DNA of 64,000 nucleotides from Thalia democratica (lineage: Eukaryota). The DNA is taken from positions 99,324,001-99,388,000 of the forward strand of contig OZ241826.1 in assembly GCA_965202585.1 (NCBI GenBank). The letters are read 5' to 3'. This document shows positions 2,869 through 60,300 of this stretch, one piece after another (the first letter of the stretch is position 1; every line of letters starts with the position of its first letter). The notes beneath the pieces were generated by a model. The model worked only from the letters and a program-made list of their open reading frames with translations, searched no databases and was not told the DNA's origin. Position numbers and translations under genes: made by a program.

Positions 2869-4176
2869 AAAATAAACAATAAACTTAAAAAGTAATTTTA
2901 TACACAATAAAAAAATGGTAAGCACCCTTTTTAACCCATTACTGCAAACATTAACTATGAAAAGCATAGTCTACCATGGGCTCCACCCACACTGTCTGCT
3001 ACCCTAGATTTTTAGTTTTATAATCATTTAAACTTTTCTTGTTGCTCTTTTTATGAGAGCAGCCAAAAAACTGCAACTAATAACTCAAAATTAAATAAGA
3101 GGAAAGAATAGGTAGTGTCACTACAATAAAACATTTAGCATAATCATAATACTGTAAGAGCACCATGTATTCAAATAGTGTCTATAAATTTTTGTATATG
3201 TAGGTAGGTAAAAATTTAAAATACTTGCATAACTGTTTTATTGATTTGTAGACTTGTTTTACTGATTAAAAAAATTAATAAGTTCAATTTGCATATAATT
3301 TGGTTTAATTTAAGTAAATTAAATGAAACAACATTTAAAAAAATGTTTCAAGTGAAAAAATTAGTTTAAAAATTTGCTTTTTCACGTTGCTTATGGATCA
3401 ATATTTTAGAAATTTTTGTTTTAAGTTTAAAAAATCAATTTTTGAGAAATAACTCGTACAAGATGAAATGATAAAATACTTTCTATCAAAAAGAATAGAT
3501 TTTGAAGATGTAGTATATAAAAATAGTTAAATAAAAATTAAGGAAACTAATTTGTTTTGAAAGTTATTGAATTTTTCAACTAATATACTAATTAATTGAA
3601 CTATTTGATAACTTTCTTTATTGTGAAAAAAAAAATCAGTCTCAAGCTCTACCATATTTTATTGGAATTGTTTTTATTATTTTATACAAATAAATAAGAT
3701 TATCATTTACTTAACCTTCTAATAACAGCTTTAAATCAGTTTTCTAAATTTTCAAAATTGATTGTAATAATTTTACTTATATTATTGAACAAGACCTTTA
3801 AAAAATATACTATAAGTTCAGACAACATAAACTTCATAATTAACATATTTTTTACTATTATACTTTTTTATTTCCTGTTTATTAGTTATTAATGTTGTTT
3901 TAATTTATGTGATAGGTTGTTTTAAAGCATAAAACTATTTTTGTTGAGCTAAATGTTATATAAATAGTCATCATAGAATAAAAAGTTTTTTAAGGTTTTA
4001 AAAAAGGGGGTTTTTATTTTTAACTGTAATATTTTTTACATAAGCTTATAGTGTAAAATCACTTTTAGCTATAATTTGATGGCTAAAAGCTTACTTATTG
4101 CTACCTTCGAAAAAAAACATTTATTTACAAAGATTTATGGCTTTATAGCTACTTATGGGAACTGTGTCGACCCCTG

Positions 4177-11703: not shown

Positions 11704-11718
11704 GATATTACTGTAGAT

Positions 11719-11930
11719 CAGGGGTTGGCAGGTCAAAAAGGAACGTTTTTTTATGTGCTTTAAAAAACATTATCAAAGACAATTTTTTTCAACAAAAAAA
11801 ACTAGGTGATAGAATATTCTTTAAATATAACACTAAAATTTTATTTTTGTGTTTTCGAAAATATTAGTATGTTAAACTAGTTGAACAAAAATTTAAATGT
11901 GACCCGCGGGCCGCAGTTTGCCGACCCCTG
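11719..11930. mobile_element. hAT (Charlie/Buster-type) MITE, 212 bp
   Basis: TIRs caggggttggcag / gtttgccgacccctg. Perfect 8-bp TSD CTGTAGAT (11711-11718, 11931-11938). Reverse complement of the 54452-54662 element. Confidence 0.92.
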
Positions 11931-12827
11931 CTGTAGATAGACAATATTTGTGTTTTCATTTACTACTAAATTCAATAAATTTTGGACATACATTTAAACA
12001 AAAACAAAAGACCTGTTTGTTGTTTTTAGCTTTTTCATTAAGCTTTAAAAAGGGTAGCCACACTACATGAAATAAAAATTGTAATTGGATACTTTTTTTT
12101 GAATGTAACTTTCAACTAAACTGTCATGAAAAAAGTTAAAATTTTGAACAAATTTTACTGATAGAATAATGAAATTAAAAAATTATTATATTTTAATAAT
12201 ATTATTTTTTTTTGCTATTTATTTCGTCTAACATAGTTGTTGGACAGTTAAAATATAAATATTAAATGAGCATGTAAAATTACATATGATGCAACATTGT
12301 TATTGCCCTGAAAACATTATTTTTCTAAAGGGTAGAGTAACTGACATTTTTATATCATAAAAAACTGCCATTACAGTATTTTAGTTTATTATATCTAAGA
12401 AAAATTGTACTTATTAGGGACATAAAAAGTAGAGCAGTGAAACATTTGTAAGATTATCAGAAAACATTGAAGAAATTTAAAAAATACAAGTGATCAACCT
12501 GAATATAGAAACCTAAAAGGACTGGAAGTTTTAAATTTTTAAAAAACCCTGTCTATTTTGTTTTTATTTTAATTAATCTGAGGTAGGTTTCAATTTTTTA
12601 TTGCCTTTTTAATTTTATTTTTATTTACTTAACTTTGCCTAAAAGTTTCTTGTGATTAGTTTGATAGTTTTTATAGTTTTTAGCTATTTAAGCTTTTTGC
12701 TTGTTTTTTGGAATGTATTTTTTTTTTGTTTTAAAAATTGTATTTTGTTATGTTCTTTTCGTATTATTTTGGGTTTTTATTGATATTCGAGCTTGAATGT
12801 TTTTTTTTCACTTTTTAACTCACATTG

Positions 12828-31143: not shown

Positions 31144-31563
31144 AGAAGCGTATATGCATTTGTACCTAGCCAATGATAGACAAACCTAGACAGTCGTTGG
31201 TCTGTCACCGAGTCTAATACCGGCCTTTATGGGTGCAACAAGCGTCGCCCTGAGTAAGTGTCAGCTCCCTCATTGAAAGGGAAATGCTAAATCATTTGCA
31301 GATGACCTAGTTGAAGATCAGGATGTTGTGATCGTTAGAGTAGTTTTCCGCTGCGATTCGTTAAGAGTAAACCTTTTATCTGGCTATCGAGGCCCGTGCT
31401 AGCACAATTTTGCTCCAACAGCCCACAATTCAGCACCTCGACAATGCCGCGATGATCCGACCCATTTGCGCGTCGGTGGTGCCAGGGAGCCGAAAGGCAA
31501 GCCCTGACATGGTCCAGCGCGGCTATTCGTTCTGAACCCCCCAAATACAAAAGGTGTTCGCTT
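31144..31563 (+). mobile_element. 420-bp non-coding, structured insertion related to the 3' UTR of the R2-like element
   Basis: GC-rich and absent from the paralogous site (~59885). 31266-31408 is homologous to the reverse complement of 52376-52517. Possible degenerate ~8-bp TSD tctgtttt / cctgcgtt. Confidence 0.75.
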
Positions 31564-34500
31564 CCTGCGTTGCCTTTTGGAGCAACAAACTAATTGAAAA
31601 CAAATTAAACATTTTATGTTAGGCAGCACGTTTGCTTCATTTTTCTTAAATTAAATACAATTTTGCAACAGTTTTTCTATAACGAAAACATTTTCGTTAA
31701 AAAAGAACGTCTGATACGTAGACTTGGTTAACATAATTGATTTTTAGTTTTGTTTCATGAAATAAGTCATTTTGTTTTAGCCTTAAAATTAAATGTTGTG
31801 ACAACGACTATTATAAAGCGATGATCTTTGTTATATAATTTGGCTTTTACTTGTAAAAATAATTTTGTAGTTTGCAAATAAATAACTAACTTTCGAGTTT
31901 TGTTCGATTTATTTTTATTTTCTTTAAAAAACAAATAGAGCCTTAATTTTTATATTTCGTCTGTGGTACATTTACTAGGTCTGTTTAAATTTTTTTAGAA
32001 ATAACATTGTTGAGTACTTGGATTTGTTATAAACTTGTGTTAAAAAGTGTTTGGTTGTTTGTACTTCAGTTTTTTTGTAAATTTAAAAGTAGCAGGTATA
32101 CAAAAGACTGTTAACTGATTTATTTTCAAACTCTTCTACTAAAAGATACTACAATTTTAATCCGTTAGGTCTGACAATTCGTTTTTCATTTACTCTGTGT
32201 TTGCCTTTTGGAGCAACAAGCAAAACAGATCAAAAATGTTAAGATAAATGGCACGCTTTTTTCGTAACTTGAAATTTTGTACGTAGTTTCTTTTCAAACG
32301 ATCCAAAAATATTAATCGATTGTATTTTTAAAGTTTTTATTTTTATAATAAATGTGTAGTAAAACAATTTTAAGATAATACTTCAAGTTTTTCGTCTGTT
32401 CGATAAAACTGTGTGCCTTAGTTTTTCAATAATTTAGTTTTATTAGATATGATAATACAACGTTACTATTGCTATATTGATTGATTTTACTCTAAAGCGT
32501 TTTTAAGAGGTATGACTACTTAAAGTAATTTAACTTGTGTTTTCAAAGCTTTTACCCATTTTGCTTTGGCAATTTGTATTTGTATATAAATAACCAACAC
32601 CAATAGTTTTTAACTTTAGTATTTAGATTTTCGTATAACAGGCTAAAATTAAACTTTATAATTAACAATTAATTAAAAACAATAAAAAACAGCTTGGTAT
32701 ATAATTCTGAAGTATGTAATTATTATGTTTTTTTTATTATAACATGCGTTTTCAAATTTTTTAAACAACTTTAGATTGTCTGTTATAACCTCAATAAAGT
32801 TTAGTATACATATAATATGAACTTAAAGACTGTAGTATATTTCTTGAGGCACACTTTTATTTTAATCGGTAGTATTTGTATTATCTTTAAAGCTGATTAA
32901 ACAAAGAAATTAAATGGAAAATCATCAAGTAAAAAACTCTAAAAAACAAAAGTTTAACTATTCACATTTTATTACATATAAAGTATTTAGAAAACCACTT
33001 AAAACAACTAACTTGATCGAAAATAATTATATAAAAAACTTCTTTAATTTATCAGCAGAGAGGCACAAAAACATTTTAGAACAAAATGCTTTCTTTTAAC
33101 ACATAGTTTAATGAATTAAGTCTATTTATTAACCTAAAATATTGATTCATGATAATTATCAACTAGTGCTGAGAAAATTTTTTAAAATTGATCTGTAAAG
33201 AAATATTAATTTTTAAAGTTACTAAATAAAAATATCTTTATTACCTTAAAAACTAGCGATATTTTTGGGAAATTGGAAAAATTATAAAGAGGTTTGAGAA
33301 TAATTTTAAAATATATGTTTAGTGTACATCTATTGAAAGAATACAAGTTTATAACAGATATAAAAAAATTGTTGAAAATTATTTAAAATTAAATTAGTGT
33401 TACAAAACAAAACTCAATTTTATGCACCAGAGGTTTAATTTGGCTAAAATCTTATAAGCTACCTTAAATGTAATATTTAAAAAAACTTTTTTTATATGTA
33501 ATTTTTATTAAACTAGTGACTTTAAATTTTGCATGTTTTGAAACGAGTTATTCAAAACAAAAAACCTAGAAGTTAAAAGACACTTTTAGACTACAATAGA
33601 AGATAGGTGCATAAAAATACAATTGATATTTAAATGATAAGCTCTTAATAGCAGAGTCGAACATTTAAAAATAAAAACAAACCAAGACAAAAACTTGATT
33701 TAAACTTTTTATTTTAGTTTTCGTATTTACTGATACAGAACTTTTATTTATTTTTTAATTACATAATTTTTATAAACCCATAACATATAGTAATTTAAAC
33801 ATGCACGTTTCGCTGGTCTGTAACTAATAACTTGTACAATTTTACTAAAATAATACTAAGCTATTAACAACCGCTTTAATCCGACTACTCTTTTAACCTG
33901 ACTTTATTAGCTACTTTAGACCGACATTGAGGCCTTATGTAAGTTATGAGTTATATTTCTAAAAACGTTGCTGTGAAAGATGAGTCTACCGCAGGCCATA
34001 GTTCTTTCAAAATAGTTGTACTAAGCAACTTAAAAATACTAATTGAAAAGAAGCATGTGTTAAAATAAACAGTAGTATAAGCGTAGTAATAAGTATTTAT
34101 TAATTTAAGAACCTACTTGTAAGCTTTTACCACAAAAACTTAACTCATTACTGTTTTAAATTGGGTACGTTTTAAGATAAAGGGTACCTAGCTACCCCCA
34201 GATTTTGGGCTTCGGGACGTAATACACCGACCCTTACTTAAGACTATAAACAGAAAAATTTATTAGAAGGAAAAAGAAAAACAGTTATATACTTGTTTTG
34301 TTTAAAAATTTTCTAAATTTAGAATTGTTTTTTTAGGTATAACTTTCTATATAGTTTTTAACAGTATGGCTATCAAATAAAGGTAAAGTTTTATTAAGTA
34401 GGTTGAAAAATACCTTTTACTATATTGTTAAATTGTCTTACAACAAATTACAAAAAATTGATACAACAAATCTTAAAGTATTATTTGCACGTCAACTCAA

Positions 34501-52365: not shown

Positions 52366-55300
52366 TAGCTGACCTATTGTAGGAACTGGCACGGCCAGAT
52401 CGAAGGCTTACTCTCAACGAATCGCAGGGTAAAACTGCTCTAACGACCCCAACACCCCGATCTTCAATCTGCTAGGCTGGACTCTGACTTAGTTAAGTCA
52501 TGACCCTATCTTTGGGCTCCGACTAGACCAGTTCTTGGGCATTCTCACGTCGCTACATGCGCGAAACTGACCTATAGTGCGGTTGTGATCCATTCTCGGC
52601 CACTTCGTCGGCCCGCCAATGGTCGCGCTTGCATTTTGGCATCTCATTCGTTTTTCACCGGACTCCGGTTCTGCCAACTTGTTGCTTTGGAGCTACACGT
52701 TTCGGCAATCACTGTTTCCGAGCATCCGCTTCCAGCACCGTTCCGACAAGAAGTTAAATCTTCCCATCATTCGCAAAACAACCATGCTTCTGCCAAGCGC
52801 CCGCAAAGGCTCCTTCGCTGCCATCTACGTTAAACCCCGGATCACCGATATCTTTGCGTCCGCGCCCAACTCGCCGCCTGTATTAAAATATGACCCGGTA
52901 TATGTACTCCTTAAGGTCAAGGCTCTCCCTGAGCCTGGCCACCATCGCTTTATGTATCTGAGACACCATGTCTTGGGTGGTGTGACACACGTTTAGGACG
53001 TGTCTGATCGACAGCGTCGCACTCAGTGAATGCCTGCAGGGCCCACTCGAAGAGCCGGGCCTGATGGCCCCGACTCCCGCTTCCACGACTCCCTATTCAA
53101 CGAACGTCTTCTCGTCCAGGCCGGACAAGAAGCTCTTTATCCACCTGCTGCGGTATCCGCTACCGCCAATATGGTTTCTCACTTCTCCCCAGCCTCCATT
53201 GCCCAGAGATTTCGACGCTCGGAGTGCTCCGGAACTCGCTCGCTCACCTTTGTTCACCTACCTGTGGACTAGGCTTGCGGATCATCGAACCTTCATTCGA
53301 ATTACGGTGGGATCTGTTTCGGTTGGTGGCTTCGACTAATCGCAGTATTGCTTTACCGCCGAAACTCGCATTTGCCTGTATGTACCAGTCCGGCGTGAAC
53401 TGGTCGAGCAGAATCTCTTCACGCAATTTGAGGTCGCAAAACTCAGTGAACGGTTATCTAATTATATCAGGTCGACGACGTAACGCGCCTTGGCCAACAC
53501 ATTGTTACGAATGATAAAGCTTTTGCATCAAAGTGAGTCGACAGCTTTCGGTTCAGCCCAAAGCCTCTCAATGTTTCAGTTCACCTCTCAGGGTGCAACT
53601 CCAAACCGAGGTAGCGGTAGTGCTGTTCGGCAGACAAATTGGCGACAAGCTCGCCATAAACACTAATCTTTGGCCTTCTGGCAGCGTACCAGAGGCCGTT
53701 TTGCGAGATACGCACTTAGCCGGCTTAAATCCTAAGCTTTTAAGTTCTAATCCGTAAGGCTTCATCCGAGCGGTCAATCTTTCACTGCGGCTACTGACCC
53801 GTACCGGCTAACAGCGCGATGTCGTCCGCGTAGGCCGTGTAGCTAAGCGCGTCTCTGTGTCAGACTCCAGTTATGCATAAACATTCTGATCCTGCGTGAG
53901 CGTCCCACAGGATCTGGTCCAAGACTAGGTTGAAGATTGTCGGGCGACAGCGGGTCACCCTGGACGACTCGTACGTGCATCACTCCACCGTGCAGACTGA
54001 TCTTAATGTTTTGATACAGATTAGCCACTACCACCAGCATTCGTATCGGCATGCCTCTGTGCGCCAGTGTCGCCATTATTTTGATCAACCGAATCAAATT
54101 TTTTAGCGACGTCCAAGAATGCGTACGAGAACTCACCGCCCTGCATACTCACACACTTGACCGCCTCCTGTACTACTCCAGCCTTCCTTACCGGCCTTGA
54201 AATCTCACTGCTCCAACTCGGTTCCGATTTTGCTCAATCTGCTGTTCAGCACCATTCTGTACAGAAACCGTGTCACAGACCCCAGGCTGATGGGCCTGTA
54301 GTTTCCCGGCAATGACGATTCATCGACCTTCGGTATTAGGGTTAGTCTGAACTGCCTCAGCATCTGAGGCAGATGGCCGGTGTTTAAGAATCGATTAACC
54401 AGTTTTTCAAAATGTGCGTGTCAATGGCGCTAACCATGTCACGGTCTAGACCAGGGGTCGACAAACTGCGGCCGACGGGCCGCATTGAATTTTTTTTTTC
54501 AACTAGTTTGATAAATTAGTTTTTTCATAAAACTAAGTTTAAGTGTTATCTTTAAAGGATAGTATAAAGCCTAAATTTATTTTTCTTCAAAAAATTCTTT
54601 TTAAGTATGTTTTTTAAAGTAGATAAAAAATGTTCAAATTTTGTTTAACCTGCCAACCCCTGGTCTAGACCGTCCGGGCTTCGGGCTTTATCCTAAGCCA
54701 CTTTCACTGAACATAGGTCTCACTCACTACAACTTCATCCTCGAGCCAGCTGAGTGAAGGCTTCTCTCTGTAGATCAACCGTCTTGTGTATCTATAAGGT
54801 CATCAGTCCCTTCTAAAAGGCGTACGTGCCTTCCGGTAGGGATCCCTCGGCCGCCAGCGGTTTGCCCTGCAAGATCTGCTTCGCGGTGTCTCACACGGCA
54901 TGTTCTTATAAGCCTTTCGTCAACGCTTTGTCTCTAGTTTGCGTCTGTCGACGCTGCGCCCATGCCGCGTCATCTCTTTGAGGGCCTTGGCGGTCTGAAA
55001 CTGTCGCCGCCTATTTGTCTTCAAAAGATTTTGTAGTCTTCCTCCAGGTCCGAGCGCCCCGCACTCATGAACGACGGTAATCGGGCGATCTGCATATCCT
55101 CTGGGTTGATGGTTTCGACCCTGTCCTCGTTCGCCTCCAAAATCGCTTTTCACTCCGCTGGGTTCGCAATCAGGGTGTGTTTGTTAAGGTTCCGTTTCGA
55201 GTCGCAATCATTATTGCAGTCGCTATATCCATGCTCATGACACATTGTAACTACTCTTAGTCTGCTGGTAAACAAGAAAAAAGAACTGGTTAGTCAGAGC

Positions 55301-55420
55301 GAGCGGTACTAGCTACATATATGAACATTCCGCCATCGCACCCAAGCTTGTCTCGAACATGGTCATTAGTACAAACTGACTGTCCTCACTTTGTAATTAA
55401 GTACAGTAACCTGTCACAAA
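52366..55420 (-). mobile_element. Decayed R2-superfamily (RLE) non-LTR retrotransposon
   Basis: Minus strand, with frameshifts: N-terminal C2H2-like/Myb-like region from ATG 55245, RSPDG, LTLIPK..PGNYRPISLGS, FLDVAKKFDSV (54087-54116), QGDPLSP (53942-53962), YADD (53821-53832), CCHC-type knuckle (52952-53038), degenerate RLE region, and 3' UTR. Absent from copy A. Confidence 0.9.
54452..54662. mobile_element. hAT (Charlie/Buster-type) MITE nested in the R2-like element
   Basis: TIRs caggggtcgacaaac / gccaacccctg. Perfect TSD GTCTAGAC (54444-54451, 54663-54670), matching the NTCTAGAN target preference. Confidence 0.95.
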
Positions 55421-57395: not shown

Positions 57396-60300
57396 CTCTA
57401 GAAACCATGCTCTAGCAGTTACATTTTATACCTACATTTTGTTTTTTCTAAACTATTAGTGAGGCCTATAACAGTAAAATGCACTTTTTGAAAAGTAAAT
57501 TGATATAAACAGTAAAAAAACAATTTAAACATATATTTAATGTTACCTCTTTTAAACTAACTGTGTTACAAGTTTTAAAAGAAACAAGCTTAGCTGGTCT
57601 CACTGATTTATTTTAGTAGAAACAAAAAAAAAGTTTTACTGTAACTCTGTATCAGCTGTCTGGATTCTGGAAACGTTACTAAGGTGTTTTTCGTTTCCAT
57701 GCCTTAATAACATCTTGAAGTATTTTTGTAACGTTTACCTATAGCGTTTTTATAAATTTACAGCTTGAAAATATATATATCCATAACTGCTTGACTAAAT
57801 ATTTAATGCAGTTTTTATAAAAGCGGCCCAATGTAAACCAAGGGCGACTTTAATATTATGTGGGTAAAAACCATTTATTTTTTAAAAGTCATGTTGTTAA
57901 AATATGTTTCATAATATTGCAGAAAAAATTGTGTATCAGTTGAAAGACTTGAGTGCATAAATGTTGCTGAAGGAGGGCTCAATTTTTGTTAATGAAAGAT
58001 TAAAAAGATTGTGTGGAATTTAAATAATATGTTGTCTAAAGATCTAAGATCTCTCGGTCATCAAAACTTAAAAACGTTTGTTTTTGTATTCTACTGTGAA
58101 GTACAAATAAAAATGATATAAAACTACTTCATATAACTACTACTGATAATGTAAAAAACTTTTTATATCAAACAATTGAATCAGTTTTTAAGTATAATAT
58201 TTTTACCGAGAAAAAAATAAAGAATATTTACTTTGTAAACTTTGTGTATTCTTTTCTAAAGCTTGTAAAATTTTAAAACATCTAAACAAAATCTAAATTT
58301 CAACGATTATTAAGGTTTTTTTGTTGCCACAAAAAAGCTTATACCTTAAACAGTAAATTAGAATAAACACTATTAAAAAGTTTTTAGTTCTTTTTGTAGC
58401 AAATCATTTTTATTCTATTAGCTTTAAACTTAATCTTGAAGTCTTACTTCTGTAGTCTAAAGTTATAATGTTTTATAACTAATAACCAATAATAACTTTT
58501 CAAAAATAAGTTTTTTACGAAGTTTCTGCAGACCCTATAAACTAACTTTGCTTTTTGAGTTAGATTTTAGAGCTATTTAAGTAGTATCTCACTGTTTTCC
58601 ATGACTATCATATATAGTTCTAGATTTTTTAAATTAGCACTGAAGAGGTCTTTGACCGAAAGTGAGTCTGATTTAAACTATCTTGAAAGAATTTCATAAG
58701 TACAATTCCTCCTCTATAAGTTGAGATCTTTTTATTAGTTTTCGAAAAATCAAAAAAATTAATAGTATGTTCTTTTTTTATAGATAACTAAACTATACAG
58801 GCTATACCTGACATACGTATGTTTTATATCAGGCTTTTATAGAATACACACAGAAATCTAAATTCTAACAAATTATACAAAAGAGCTAAAAAAGGTATAA
58901 AGGATTTTTTTATTCTAGTAAACTTTGTTTTTAATTGTAAGATCAATCTTAGCAAAACATGTATAAGTAAACAAGACGTACTACTGGTAAACATGAAAAC
59001 TATATAATTCTTCCATTTTTGAAAGCATCAAAAGTTTTCCAGTGACAAATTACATTCTTCGAATCATTTTGTAGTTGAATTAAGGTTTTATAACTTAACG
59101 GCAACTGTGAGTTAATTCTCAACAAAGATTTATAGCCAAACTTTTGCACTAAATTGCTCTGTTAGTATTAATATAACTTTACAAGAGTATGTATTGCTAG
59201 CCTTTGCCGCAAATTAGTTTAATTTTTACTTATAACTCTGTTAAAATAATTGGTGTACACTGTAATTTTTTTGTTTTAAAACACATAACTTGAAATTTAA
59301 AAGCTATTCATTTTTGTATCATAAGAAAACATGGTGACGTCTACTATTTTGAAGCCCTGATTTTAAATGCATTTTAAAACTTAAAACTATCAAGATACTT
59401 TCGCATTTTGCAAATAAACAATTTACTTTTGTTATTAATAGTATTTTGCTTCGATTTTTCTATTAAAAAATATAACAGTGCCAAAATGTTATTGATTTTT
59501 CTCTTAAATGCTATTTCAAGGTTTCTGTAGAGTGTAAAGCTTCTTTAGAATATAATATTGTTGAGTCTTTCAACTTATTTTGAGTTTATGTTAAAAATTT
59601 ATTTACTTTTTTCTACTCCAAACTTTTGTAAATGTAATTTTAGCAGGTTTCCACTACAAACGACAATTACATAAGTACATTTAACTGTTGTTGATGAAAA
59701 AAATGTAATTAAAAGATAATATAACAGTTTTGATAACTTTTGTTTAACCAACTGATCTTTTTCAGTTTTGTATTCGCCGGTTTAGCAACAAATTTTAACC
59801 AAAAAGATCAAGATTTATTTAATGACATATAAAAGACATCATAAAAGATTTTACAAAGTCTTTTGTCTGATAAATCCTTTTTTAGTCTGTATTTGTCTTT
59901 TTGAGCAATAAACTAATTCAAAACAGATCAAAAACTTTATGTTATACTTCTTTTTTTTTTACCTCAAATACAACTTTGCAACGATATTTCTATTTTTAAA
60001 ATGTAATTTTTTAAAAAGCACGTCTGATATGGAGACTCAGTTAACATAAATGACTTTTAGTTTTGTTTTATGAAAAAGTAATCTTATTTTAGCCTTAAAA
60101 CTAAATGTTGTGACAACAGCTGTTTTGAAGCGATGATCTTTATTAGATTACTTGGCTTTTACTTGTAAAAGTAGTTTTGTAGTTTGAAAAATAATGATTT
60201 TTTTCTGGTTTTATTCGATTTTTTTTTATATAAAAAAATAGAGCCTAAATTTTTATATTTTGTCTTTGGTACACTTACTAGGTCTGTTTAATTTTATTTT

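Follow-up and report, generated by a model that had tools for sequence, protein, structure and literature searches.

A lineage of R2 retrotransposons in fish (R2Gs, R2Pt, R2Bs-A/B and R2Sb) carries 28S-derived sequence in its 3' UTR, which has been suggested to stabilise pairing with the target, and R2 families without target specificity have also been described (Kojima, Seto and Fujiwara 2016, PMC5035012). The sections of Eickbush and Eickbush (2012, PMC3414825) drawn on here describe R2 as having a 5' ribozyme and a specific 28S site, and its SIDEs as arising by internal deletion of full-length elements. On reaching the end of one template, the R2 reverse transcriptase (RT) can jump to the 3' end of a second (Bibillo and Eickbush, as cited in PMC7650587). 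LINE machinery also carries 28S sequence into dispersed retrocopies in the mammalian 28S-derived SINE28 (Longo et al. 2015, PMC4994717) and in LINE chimeras with cellular RNAs (PMC13174262).

We describe here a GC-rich insertion in a 64,000-nt stretch of the Thalia democratica genome (contig OZ241826.1, positions 99,324,001 to 99,388,000; referred to as the window). The insertion is very probably a dead, 5'-truncated retrocopy of an R2-like non-LTR retrotransposon family that lives outside the ribosomal DNA (rDNA) and includes a degraded element at 52 kb of the same window. Like the fish lineage, this family has a diverged stretch of host 28S in its 3' UTR, as part of the element itself and not of the flanking DNA (PMC5035012). 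The fish elements lie within rDNA, where their insertion is reported to replace 110–130 bp of 28S on the upstream side of the canonical R2 site (PMC5035012), whereas the Thalia copies are outside it; the Thalia capture is also larger, comprising the last ~300 nt of 28S and ~40 nt of spacer, is internal to the UTR with a 190-nt tail behind it, and looks as if it has been re-copied several times. The Thalia family combines a fish-type 28S-derived 3' UTR with loss of the rDNA target. R2-clade and R2-like elements dispersed outside rDNA likewise occur as 5'-truncated copies, and no rRNA-derived UTR module is described for them in the excerpts of that literature considered here. The insertion resembles the R2 SIDEs, as those sections of PMC3414825 present them, in being a short non-coding unit that uses an R2 3' end for target-primed reverse transcription, and it differs from them in that its 5' end falls at random within the UTR and it matches no ribozyme. 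SINE28 and the chimeras are stand-alone SINEs or one-off L1 chimeras (PMC4994717, PMC13174262), whereas in Thalia the rRNA piece forms an internal part of the UTR of an autonomous R2-like element, and they are looser parallels than fish R2.

The insertion at 31 kb and its similarity to rDNA

The window is AT-rich (~24% G+C) with two GC-rich islands, at 31.1–31.6 kb and 52.4–55.4 kb, and contains tandem segmental duplications with a period of 23–31 kb. Alignment of the 31-kb region with its paralogue at ~59.9 kb places the GC-rich insertion at 31144–31571 on the plus strand, with edges that are ambiguous by one or two T residues. The empty, uninserted site lies at 59886–59909 (plus strand), where the two flanks of the insertion, TCTGTTTT and TGCCTTTTGGAGCAAC, form an unbroken TCTGTATTTGTCTTTTTGAGCAAT, and comparison of the flanks with this site reveals no clear target-site duplication at 31144–31571. 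A first-pass annotation of the window had reported an insertion at 31144–31563 that is missing from the paralogous site; the insertion is real and clean, the uninterrupted paralogue confirms its absence there, and its true end lies ~8 nt further on.

Its first 241 nt (31144–31384) are 86% identical to the genome's own rDNA (genome search, E 1e-72). This 28S-derived module spans ~-249 to -9 relative to the 28S 3' end and, as judged from rDNA identity and an Rfam LSU match, includes the ES41/H98 tip, the 5' strand of H99, H100 and H101. The rDNA matches to the first 238 nt (86–87% identity) lie in tandem arrays with ~15.1 kb spacing on unplaced contigs. No Rfam family matches at the gathering threshold anywhere in the window; a permissive scan aligns 31291–31387 with positions 3300–3397 of the 3401 in LSU_rRNA_eukarya (23.5 bits, E 0.002), a score below the gathering score because the insertion is a fragment. 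At one rDNA locus the last 1.7 kb of 28S rRNA score 1648 bits and are followed by U2 and U5 snRNA genes (137.7 and 79.8 bits); in the ~15.1-kb repeat these genes (L010:2205–2596) lie ~0.45 kb beyond the 28S 3' end.

The 28S homology stops ~10 nt short of the 28S 3' end and gives way to a 187-nt non-rDNA tail. The variable first part of the tail (31385–31453; GGC..CGTGCTAGC..) is homologous by alignment to the post-28S segment of other copies; next comes a conserved core (31454–31527, see below), and the 3' terminal segment (31528–31571) closes with ...GGTGTTCGCTTCCTGCGTT, the family's common 3' end, which occurs beside unrelated flanks in L058, L039, L035, L043, L085 and others. The 86% identity to rDNA would fit an orphan rDNA fragment, comprising the 28S 3' end and spacer, that moved at the DNA level and had nothing to do with retrotransposition. 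Such an origin is extremely unlikely, since the 187 nt after the 28S part find no match in the rDNA spacer and instead match the 3' end of the R2-like family, and the tail is missing from each of the 54 rDNA units examined near the 28S 3' end; rDNA contigs contain none of the 23 scored tail candidates of the genome.

The sequence shared with the 52-kb element

The inverted match between the insertion and the 52-kb element covers 31311–31384 and 52394–52467 (74 nt, 85% identity; blastn E 3e-18). Helices were assigned from the Rfam structure line for the rDNA copy, in which H97 lies ~300 nt from the 28S 3' end, the ES41/H98 arm has a GAAA-capped hairpin at its tip, the last 28S nucleotides close H99, H100 is short, and H101 is a long hairpin (UUGAAGAUCGGGG...CCUUUGAUCU). 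By its sequence, the common 74-nt stretch is identifiable as 28S helix H101. The H101 copy in the 3' UTR of the 52-kb element (52397–52467, minus strand) is 93% identical to rDNA and folds like rDNA H101; the decayed copy in the insertion (31311–31381, plus strand), recognised by alignment, helix assignment and fold, is ~88–92% identical. Since both match rDNA at H101, the stems previously singled out in them (agatc.../...atct, gtag/ctgc and others) are host 28S rRNA helices. Both copies leave rDNA at the same point, after ...CCTT(T/C)(G/T)ATCT and ~10 nt before the 28S 3' end, and both then read GGC...CGTGC(T/C)AG. The match had been drawn more widely, between 31266–31408 and 52376–52517; the 74 nt at 85% identity stand, and outside these and the ~20 nt that follow there is no position-for-position homology.

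The first-pass annotation also held that structure is kept in this region where sequence is not. Its 'hairpin 1' and '16-nt hairpin' in the insertion are the decayed 28S ES41/H98 tip and H99/H100, whereas their supposed counterparts in the 52-kb element, 'gccc[7]gggt' and 'tgacttaactaagtca', belong to a piece (52468–52507, minus strand) derived from H97, as comparison with rDNA, L033, L046 and the paralogue L057 indicates. An internal deletion with a CCTAG repeat on either side has brought the latter hairpins up against H101, so that non-homologous parts of 28S had been compared in a register that is only apparent. Earlier assignments of these upstream hairpins to an R2 UTR, and then to 28S ES41, were dropped, since L033, L046 and the paralogues show their H97 origin. 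At the reported swap of a G-C for an A-T pair, rDNA has G·U; one copy has A-U and the other G-C, which amounts to two independent single transitions.

Covariation over H99–H101 was tested on an alignment of rDNA and 21 element copies (22 sequences) with the Rfam-derived structure and 500 shuffles. The score is 0.079 compared with 0.085 in the shuffles, 402 of which reach it, and 61.5% of cells are paired compared with 61.0%. The 28S-derived part carries no signal beyond inherited rRNA sequence and its decay, and the covariation proposed for the shared region is no better than in shuffled alignments. In the insertion the long H101 helix is lost from the best fold (-11.6 kcal/mol, z +0.1), whereas rDNA (-17.9) and the 52-kb element (-18.1) form it. 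The shared structure had been put forward as an R2 recognition element; what is shared is host 28S H101, and the element that covaries is the tail core, which the 52-kb copy has lost.

The R2-like family and its dispersed copies

The 52-kb element (52368–55390, minus strand) is a degraded R2-like non-LTR retrotransposon, identified from its translation, its RT match and its paralogues. Its reading frame is broken by many stops and frameshifts, and the translation retains the RT motifs RPISL, F.D..K.FDSV, QGDPLSP and AYADDIALLA (YADD at 53821–53832), as well as a CCHC-like string (C..H..C...H) near 53040 that has no significant PDB match. A 71-residue piece of the RT has its best PDB match in Bombyx R2 (R2Bm, 8ibw/8gh6; phmmer E 3e-7), followed by R2Tg and others. 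The short ORF pieces of the element give no Pfam match; its relatives match RVT_1, and the better-preserved L086 matches R2 at E 1e-22. The label 'R2-like' given to the element from the outset is supported, at the level of sequence, for its polymerase. Within the RT region lies a MITE-like insertion that is foreign to the element (54445–54669, minus strand), with terminal inverted repeats (TCTAGACCAGGGG...); it is recognised from inverted-repeat pairs I11/I12 with 11747–11937, and a related copy occupies 11714–11937 (~11.8 kb).

Paralogous copies of the 52-kb element are found at C1:99304.8k (L056) and C1:99405.7k (L057), and the 3' flank is the same in all three, so that one old insertion was multiplied by segmental duplication. 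In each paralogue a different segment of the 28S module has been deleted between direct repeats of 5 nt, CCTAG...CCTAG in the 52-kb element and GATAG...GATAG in L057, which retains the stretch deleted from the former. The tail ends ~30–60 nt after the junction in the three copies and the conserved core is absent from all of them; alignment and comparison of the paralogues show that the 52-kb element retains a remnant of the first part of the tail (GGCCGTGCCAG..; 52368–52396, minus strand) up to the element end, with the core deleted. As it lacks the core, the 52-kb element cannot itself be the source of the insertion.

The tail is present at at least 20 dispersed loci, ~17 of which have a 28S-derived piece directly upstream; the inspected loci were compared by blastn with the final 400 nt of 28S and 100 nt of spacer. 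The commonest form of the 3' UTR has ~300 nt of the host 28S 3' end (H97 to H101), ~40 nt of the 3' external transcribed spacer (ETS) and the ~190-nt conserved tail, and a second form, to which the insertion and the 52-kb element belong, is without the last 10 nt of 28S and without spacer. At the junction of the second form (type A: the insertion, the 52-kb element, L058, L032, L085, L045 and L043) 28S breaks off at GATCT and GGCCGTCGGG opens the tail. At the other junction (type B: L035, L033, L037, L046, L047, L048 and L049) 28S runs through its true 3' end to spacer position +39 to +41, and is followed by a short linker, a second copy of 28S ~-31 to -10 (GAGAGTAAGCCTTCGATCT) and the same GGCCGTCGGG. 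Both tail subgroups (...CCTGCGTT and ...CATGCGTT) include type B copies, whereas type A is confined to the first, so type A is probably derived; it probably arose from type B by losing the stretch between two 19-nt direct repeats, and the distribution weakly suggests that the spacer-containing form came first.

The type A junction bears on whether the insertion might be a one-off chimeric retrocopy of the U6-L1 type, made when the RT jumped from a truncated R2-like RNA to mature 28S rRNA during insertion at 31 kb. End-to-end template jumping is known for the R2 RT (the work of Bibillo and Eickbush, in the form in which PMC7650587 cites it), and the layout fits, with the 3' portion of a cellular RNA ahead of a LINE 3' end. 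The same 28S/tail junction (GATCT|GGC..) recurs in all of the other type A copies, however, and is placed 10 nt inside 28S and not at its end. The insertion and L032, which are 60 kb apart on opposite strands with unrelated flanks, moreover have in common 13 derived substitutions relative to rDNA, so that the 28S module was already part of a diverging source lineage and was not captured afresh at 31 kb. The common junction and the common derived changes place the template jump in an ancestor, and a chimera formed on the spot is very unlikely.

The 3' and 5' ends of the copies differ in character. Most of the copies that reach the 3' end have ...TTCGCTTC(C/A)TGCGTT beside unrelated flanks, L032 and L050 being without it. 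For each of 24 copies we recorded the start of 28S homology, the 3' end and the G+C of the 60-nt upstream flank. Where that flank is AT-rich, copies begin at -249 (the insertion), -238, -217, -210, -193, -149, -87 and -36 from the 28S 3' end. L041, L044, L052 and L048b begin inside the tail and L053 within an old H101-like module; L035, L046, L048a, L049 and L040b run upstream into GC-rich sequence that they have in common with the 3' UTR of the 52-kb element, and L085 and the 52-kb element itself extend further, into decayed coding sequence for the RT and CCHC regions. A fixed 3' end combined with smoothly distributed 5' ends is the hallmark of target-primed reverse transcription with premature termination, and not of a unit with a 5' end of its own. 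Alignments show the insertion to be collinear with L032, with the 3' parts of L035 and L058, and with the 3' UTRs of copies that retain ORF remains (L085, L049, and the 52-kb element and its paralogues), among others, which supports what the first-pass annotation had offered as its fallback, a 5'-truncated copy of a sister family.

Its favoured reading, a SIDE- or SINE-like parasite, fares less well. Such a unit would have a 28S-derived head and an R2-like tail, would itself be transcribed, and would be mobilised repeatedly by an R2-like protein. The insertion's tail is common to the autonomous family, its 13 changes in common with L032 are what a single short master would produce, and there are ORF-less relatives, L042 (~1.5 kb) and L040b (~0.75 kb). 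The 5' ends are nevertheless scattered over 250 nt and in other copies run on into UTR and ORF, so that they range from inside the tail through 28S to the R2-like ORF; the same module lies downstream of ORF remains in the 52-kb element and L085, and the junction type is present in only 4–6 copies. The insertion contains no tRNA, its only Rfam match is to LSU rRNA, and there is no 5S, 7SL or other pol III-type head. No ribozyme family matches the insertion or eight better-preserved copies at E values up to 5–10, a search that a divergent HDV-like fold could escape. The random 5' truncations with a common 3' end and the lack of covariation in the shared region are the two outcomes that the first-pass annotation had itself named as refuting its proposal; a non-autonomous unit is very unlikely, and a truncated retrocopy remains the reading that we prefer. 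A further idea, that the tail itself is a SIDE made of a 5' ribozyme and a 3' UTR, was dropped, as the apparent 5' ends of head-to-tail elements in L040 and L052 look unlike the point at which the tail begins.

None of the members found is intact or full-length, and no examined locus has an open frame longer than ~280 codons; the active element's structure has therefore been reconstructed from decayed copies. No copy was encountered at the 28S AAGG|TAGC site of R2 proper; all lie in unrelated, mostly AT-rich flanks. In this assembly the family looks extinct and non-rDNA.

Several loci have features of their own. At L040:600–1800 and L052:1350–1600 (minus strands) a tail end is followed head-to-tail by ~30 nt of AT-rich, TATATG-like sequence and the GC-rich start of another ORF-less element. 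L042 and L040b have two 28S-like modules and are possibly true non-autonomous members. At L045:1560–2410 an element of ~780 bp with inverted ends (CAGTGCTTCTGAA...) sits exactly at the 28S/tail junction. L091:1970–2012 (G000:C4:21.35M) matches a type I hammerhead ribozyme at gathering score (34.5 bits) beside an R2-like RT relic. L038 and L039 (G000:C1:34.505M and 34.528M) are 100% identical inverted copies of an R2-like 3' portion, 22 kb apart, that have lost the whole 28S module; their identity and orientation point to a recent inverted duplication.

The tail core and the origin of the 28S module

The conserved core of the tail (31454–31527, plus strand; 74 nt) is the best-matching part of the tail at >20 other loci in the genome, at 78–92% identity. 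Its helices are a CCGAC/GTCGG stem enclosing a UUCG-like loop, a GGG/CCC stem, a GCC-GAAA-GGC hairpin, a closing GACCGG/CCGGTC stem and CCGC/GCGG. These five helices were tested on 23 copies with 500 shuffles and slid-partner controls. With 83% of cells paired and eight pairs changed on both sides, the covariation score is 0.177 compared with 0.137 in the shuffles, none of which reaches it, and 0.04–0.08 in the slid controls; the structure was hand-drawn from the same sequences, which makes the test partly circular and biased in its favour. RNAalifold on the full tail alignment gives only a weak partial structure. The core is probably the RNA element recognised by the R2-like protein and, on this modelled structure, appears a better candidate than the 28S module for the protein-binding RNA of the lineage.

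We propose that the insertion was made by the family's R2-like protein, which would have bound the tail core in its folded form and used a nick at an AT-rich site to prime reverse transcription; synthesis would have run through the tail and on into 241 nt of the 28S-derived module before it broke off. Neutral decay of the insertion would have followed; 26 of its 34 differences from rDNA are G/C to A/T. The module itself probably entered the UTR by an RT template switch onto abundant 28S precursor RNA, a step deduced from the junctions.

Captured rDNA extends as far as spacer +39 to +41, which places its end at the foot of the second ETS hairpin. The 3' ETS (L010:1749–1850) folds into a hairpin at +1 to +36 and a 14-bp GAAA-capped hairpin at +40 to +71, followed by U9 (z -4.6). 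In this predicted fold the second hairpin with U9 looks like a terminator or processing signal, and its foot could be the site of a processed pre-rRNA 3' end.

Capture may have happened repeatedly. L042, L050 and L053 have an older and much more diverged H98–H101-like module directly before the tail; in L050, 67 nt at 98.5% identity to present rDNA are joined to the old diverged H101-like module, and in L048 a 28S piece is nested behind older, H97-like sequence. Taken together, such arrangements suggest that the rRNA-like module of the UTR was overwritten from host 28S or pre-rRNA more than once, for which homology-guided template switching is the likely route. By its sequence, the 19-nt '28S repeat' at the start of the type B tail looks like the last remnant of the old H98–H101-like module. 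That the module (H97–H101 and the first spacer hairpin) is a functional rRNA mimic and no mere passenger, retained in the 3' UTR and periodically re-copied from host pre-rRNA, is rather unlikely. If it were one, it might serve in ribosomal-protein or nucleolar association, in pre-rRNA 3'-end processing or in pairing with rDNA, and the old versions in L042, L050 and L053 and the fresher ones elsewhere would reflect selection together with homology-driven template switching.

These results correct the earlier reading of the locus: what had looked like a covarying RNA is host rRNA that a transposon carries, and the insertion is a dead copy of the ordinary kind. A non-rDNA R2-like lineage with ~300 nt of 28S and ~40 nt of 3' ETS in its 3' UTR, apparently re-copied more than once, is moderately new, and a lineage that is gone from rDNA yet has so large a piece of 28S and spacer in its 3' UTR is of interest for transposon biology. 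The repeated overwriting from host pre-rRNA, if true, would be in-genome evidence for the template jumping seen in vitro with the R2 RT, and the end of the capture at the foot of the spacer hairpin hints at the position at which pre-rRNA is cut in Thalia democratica.
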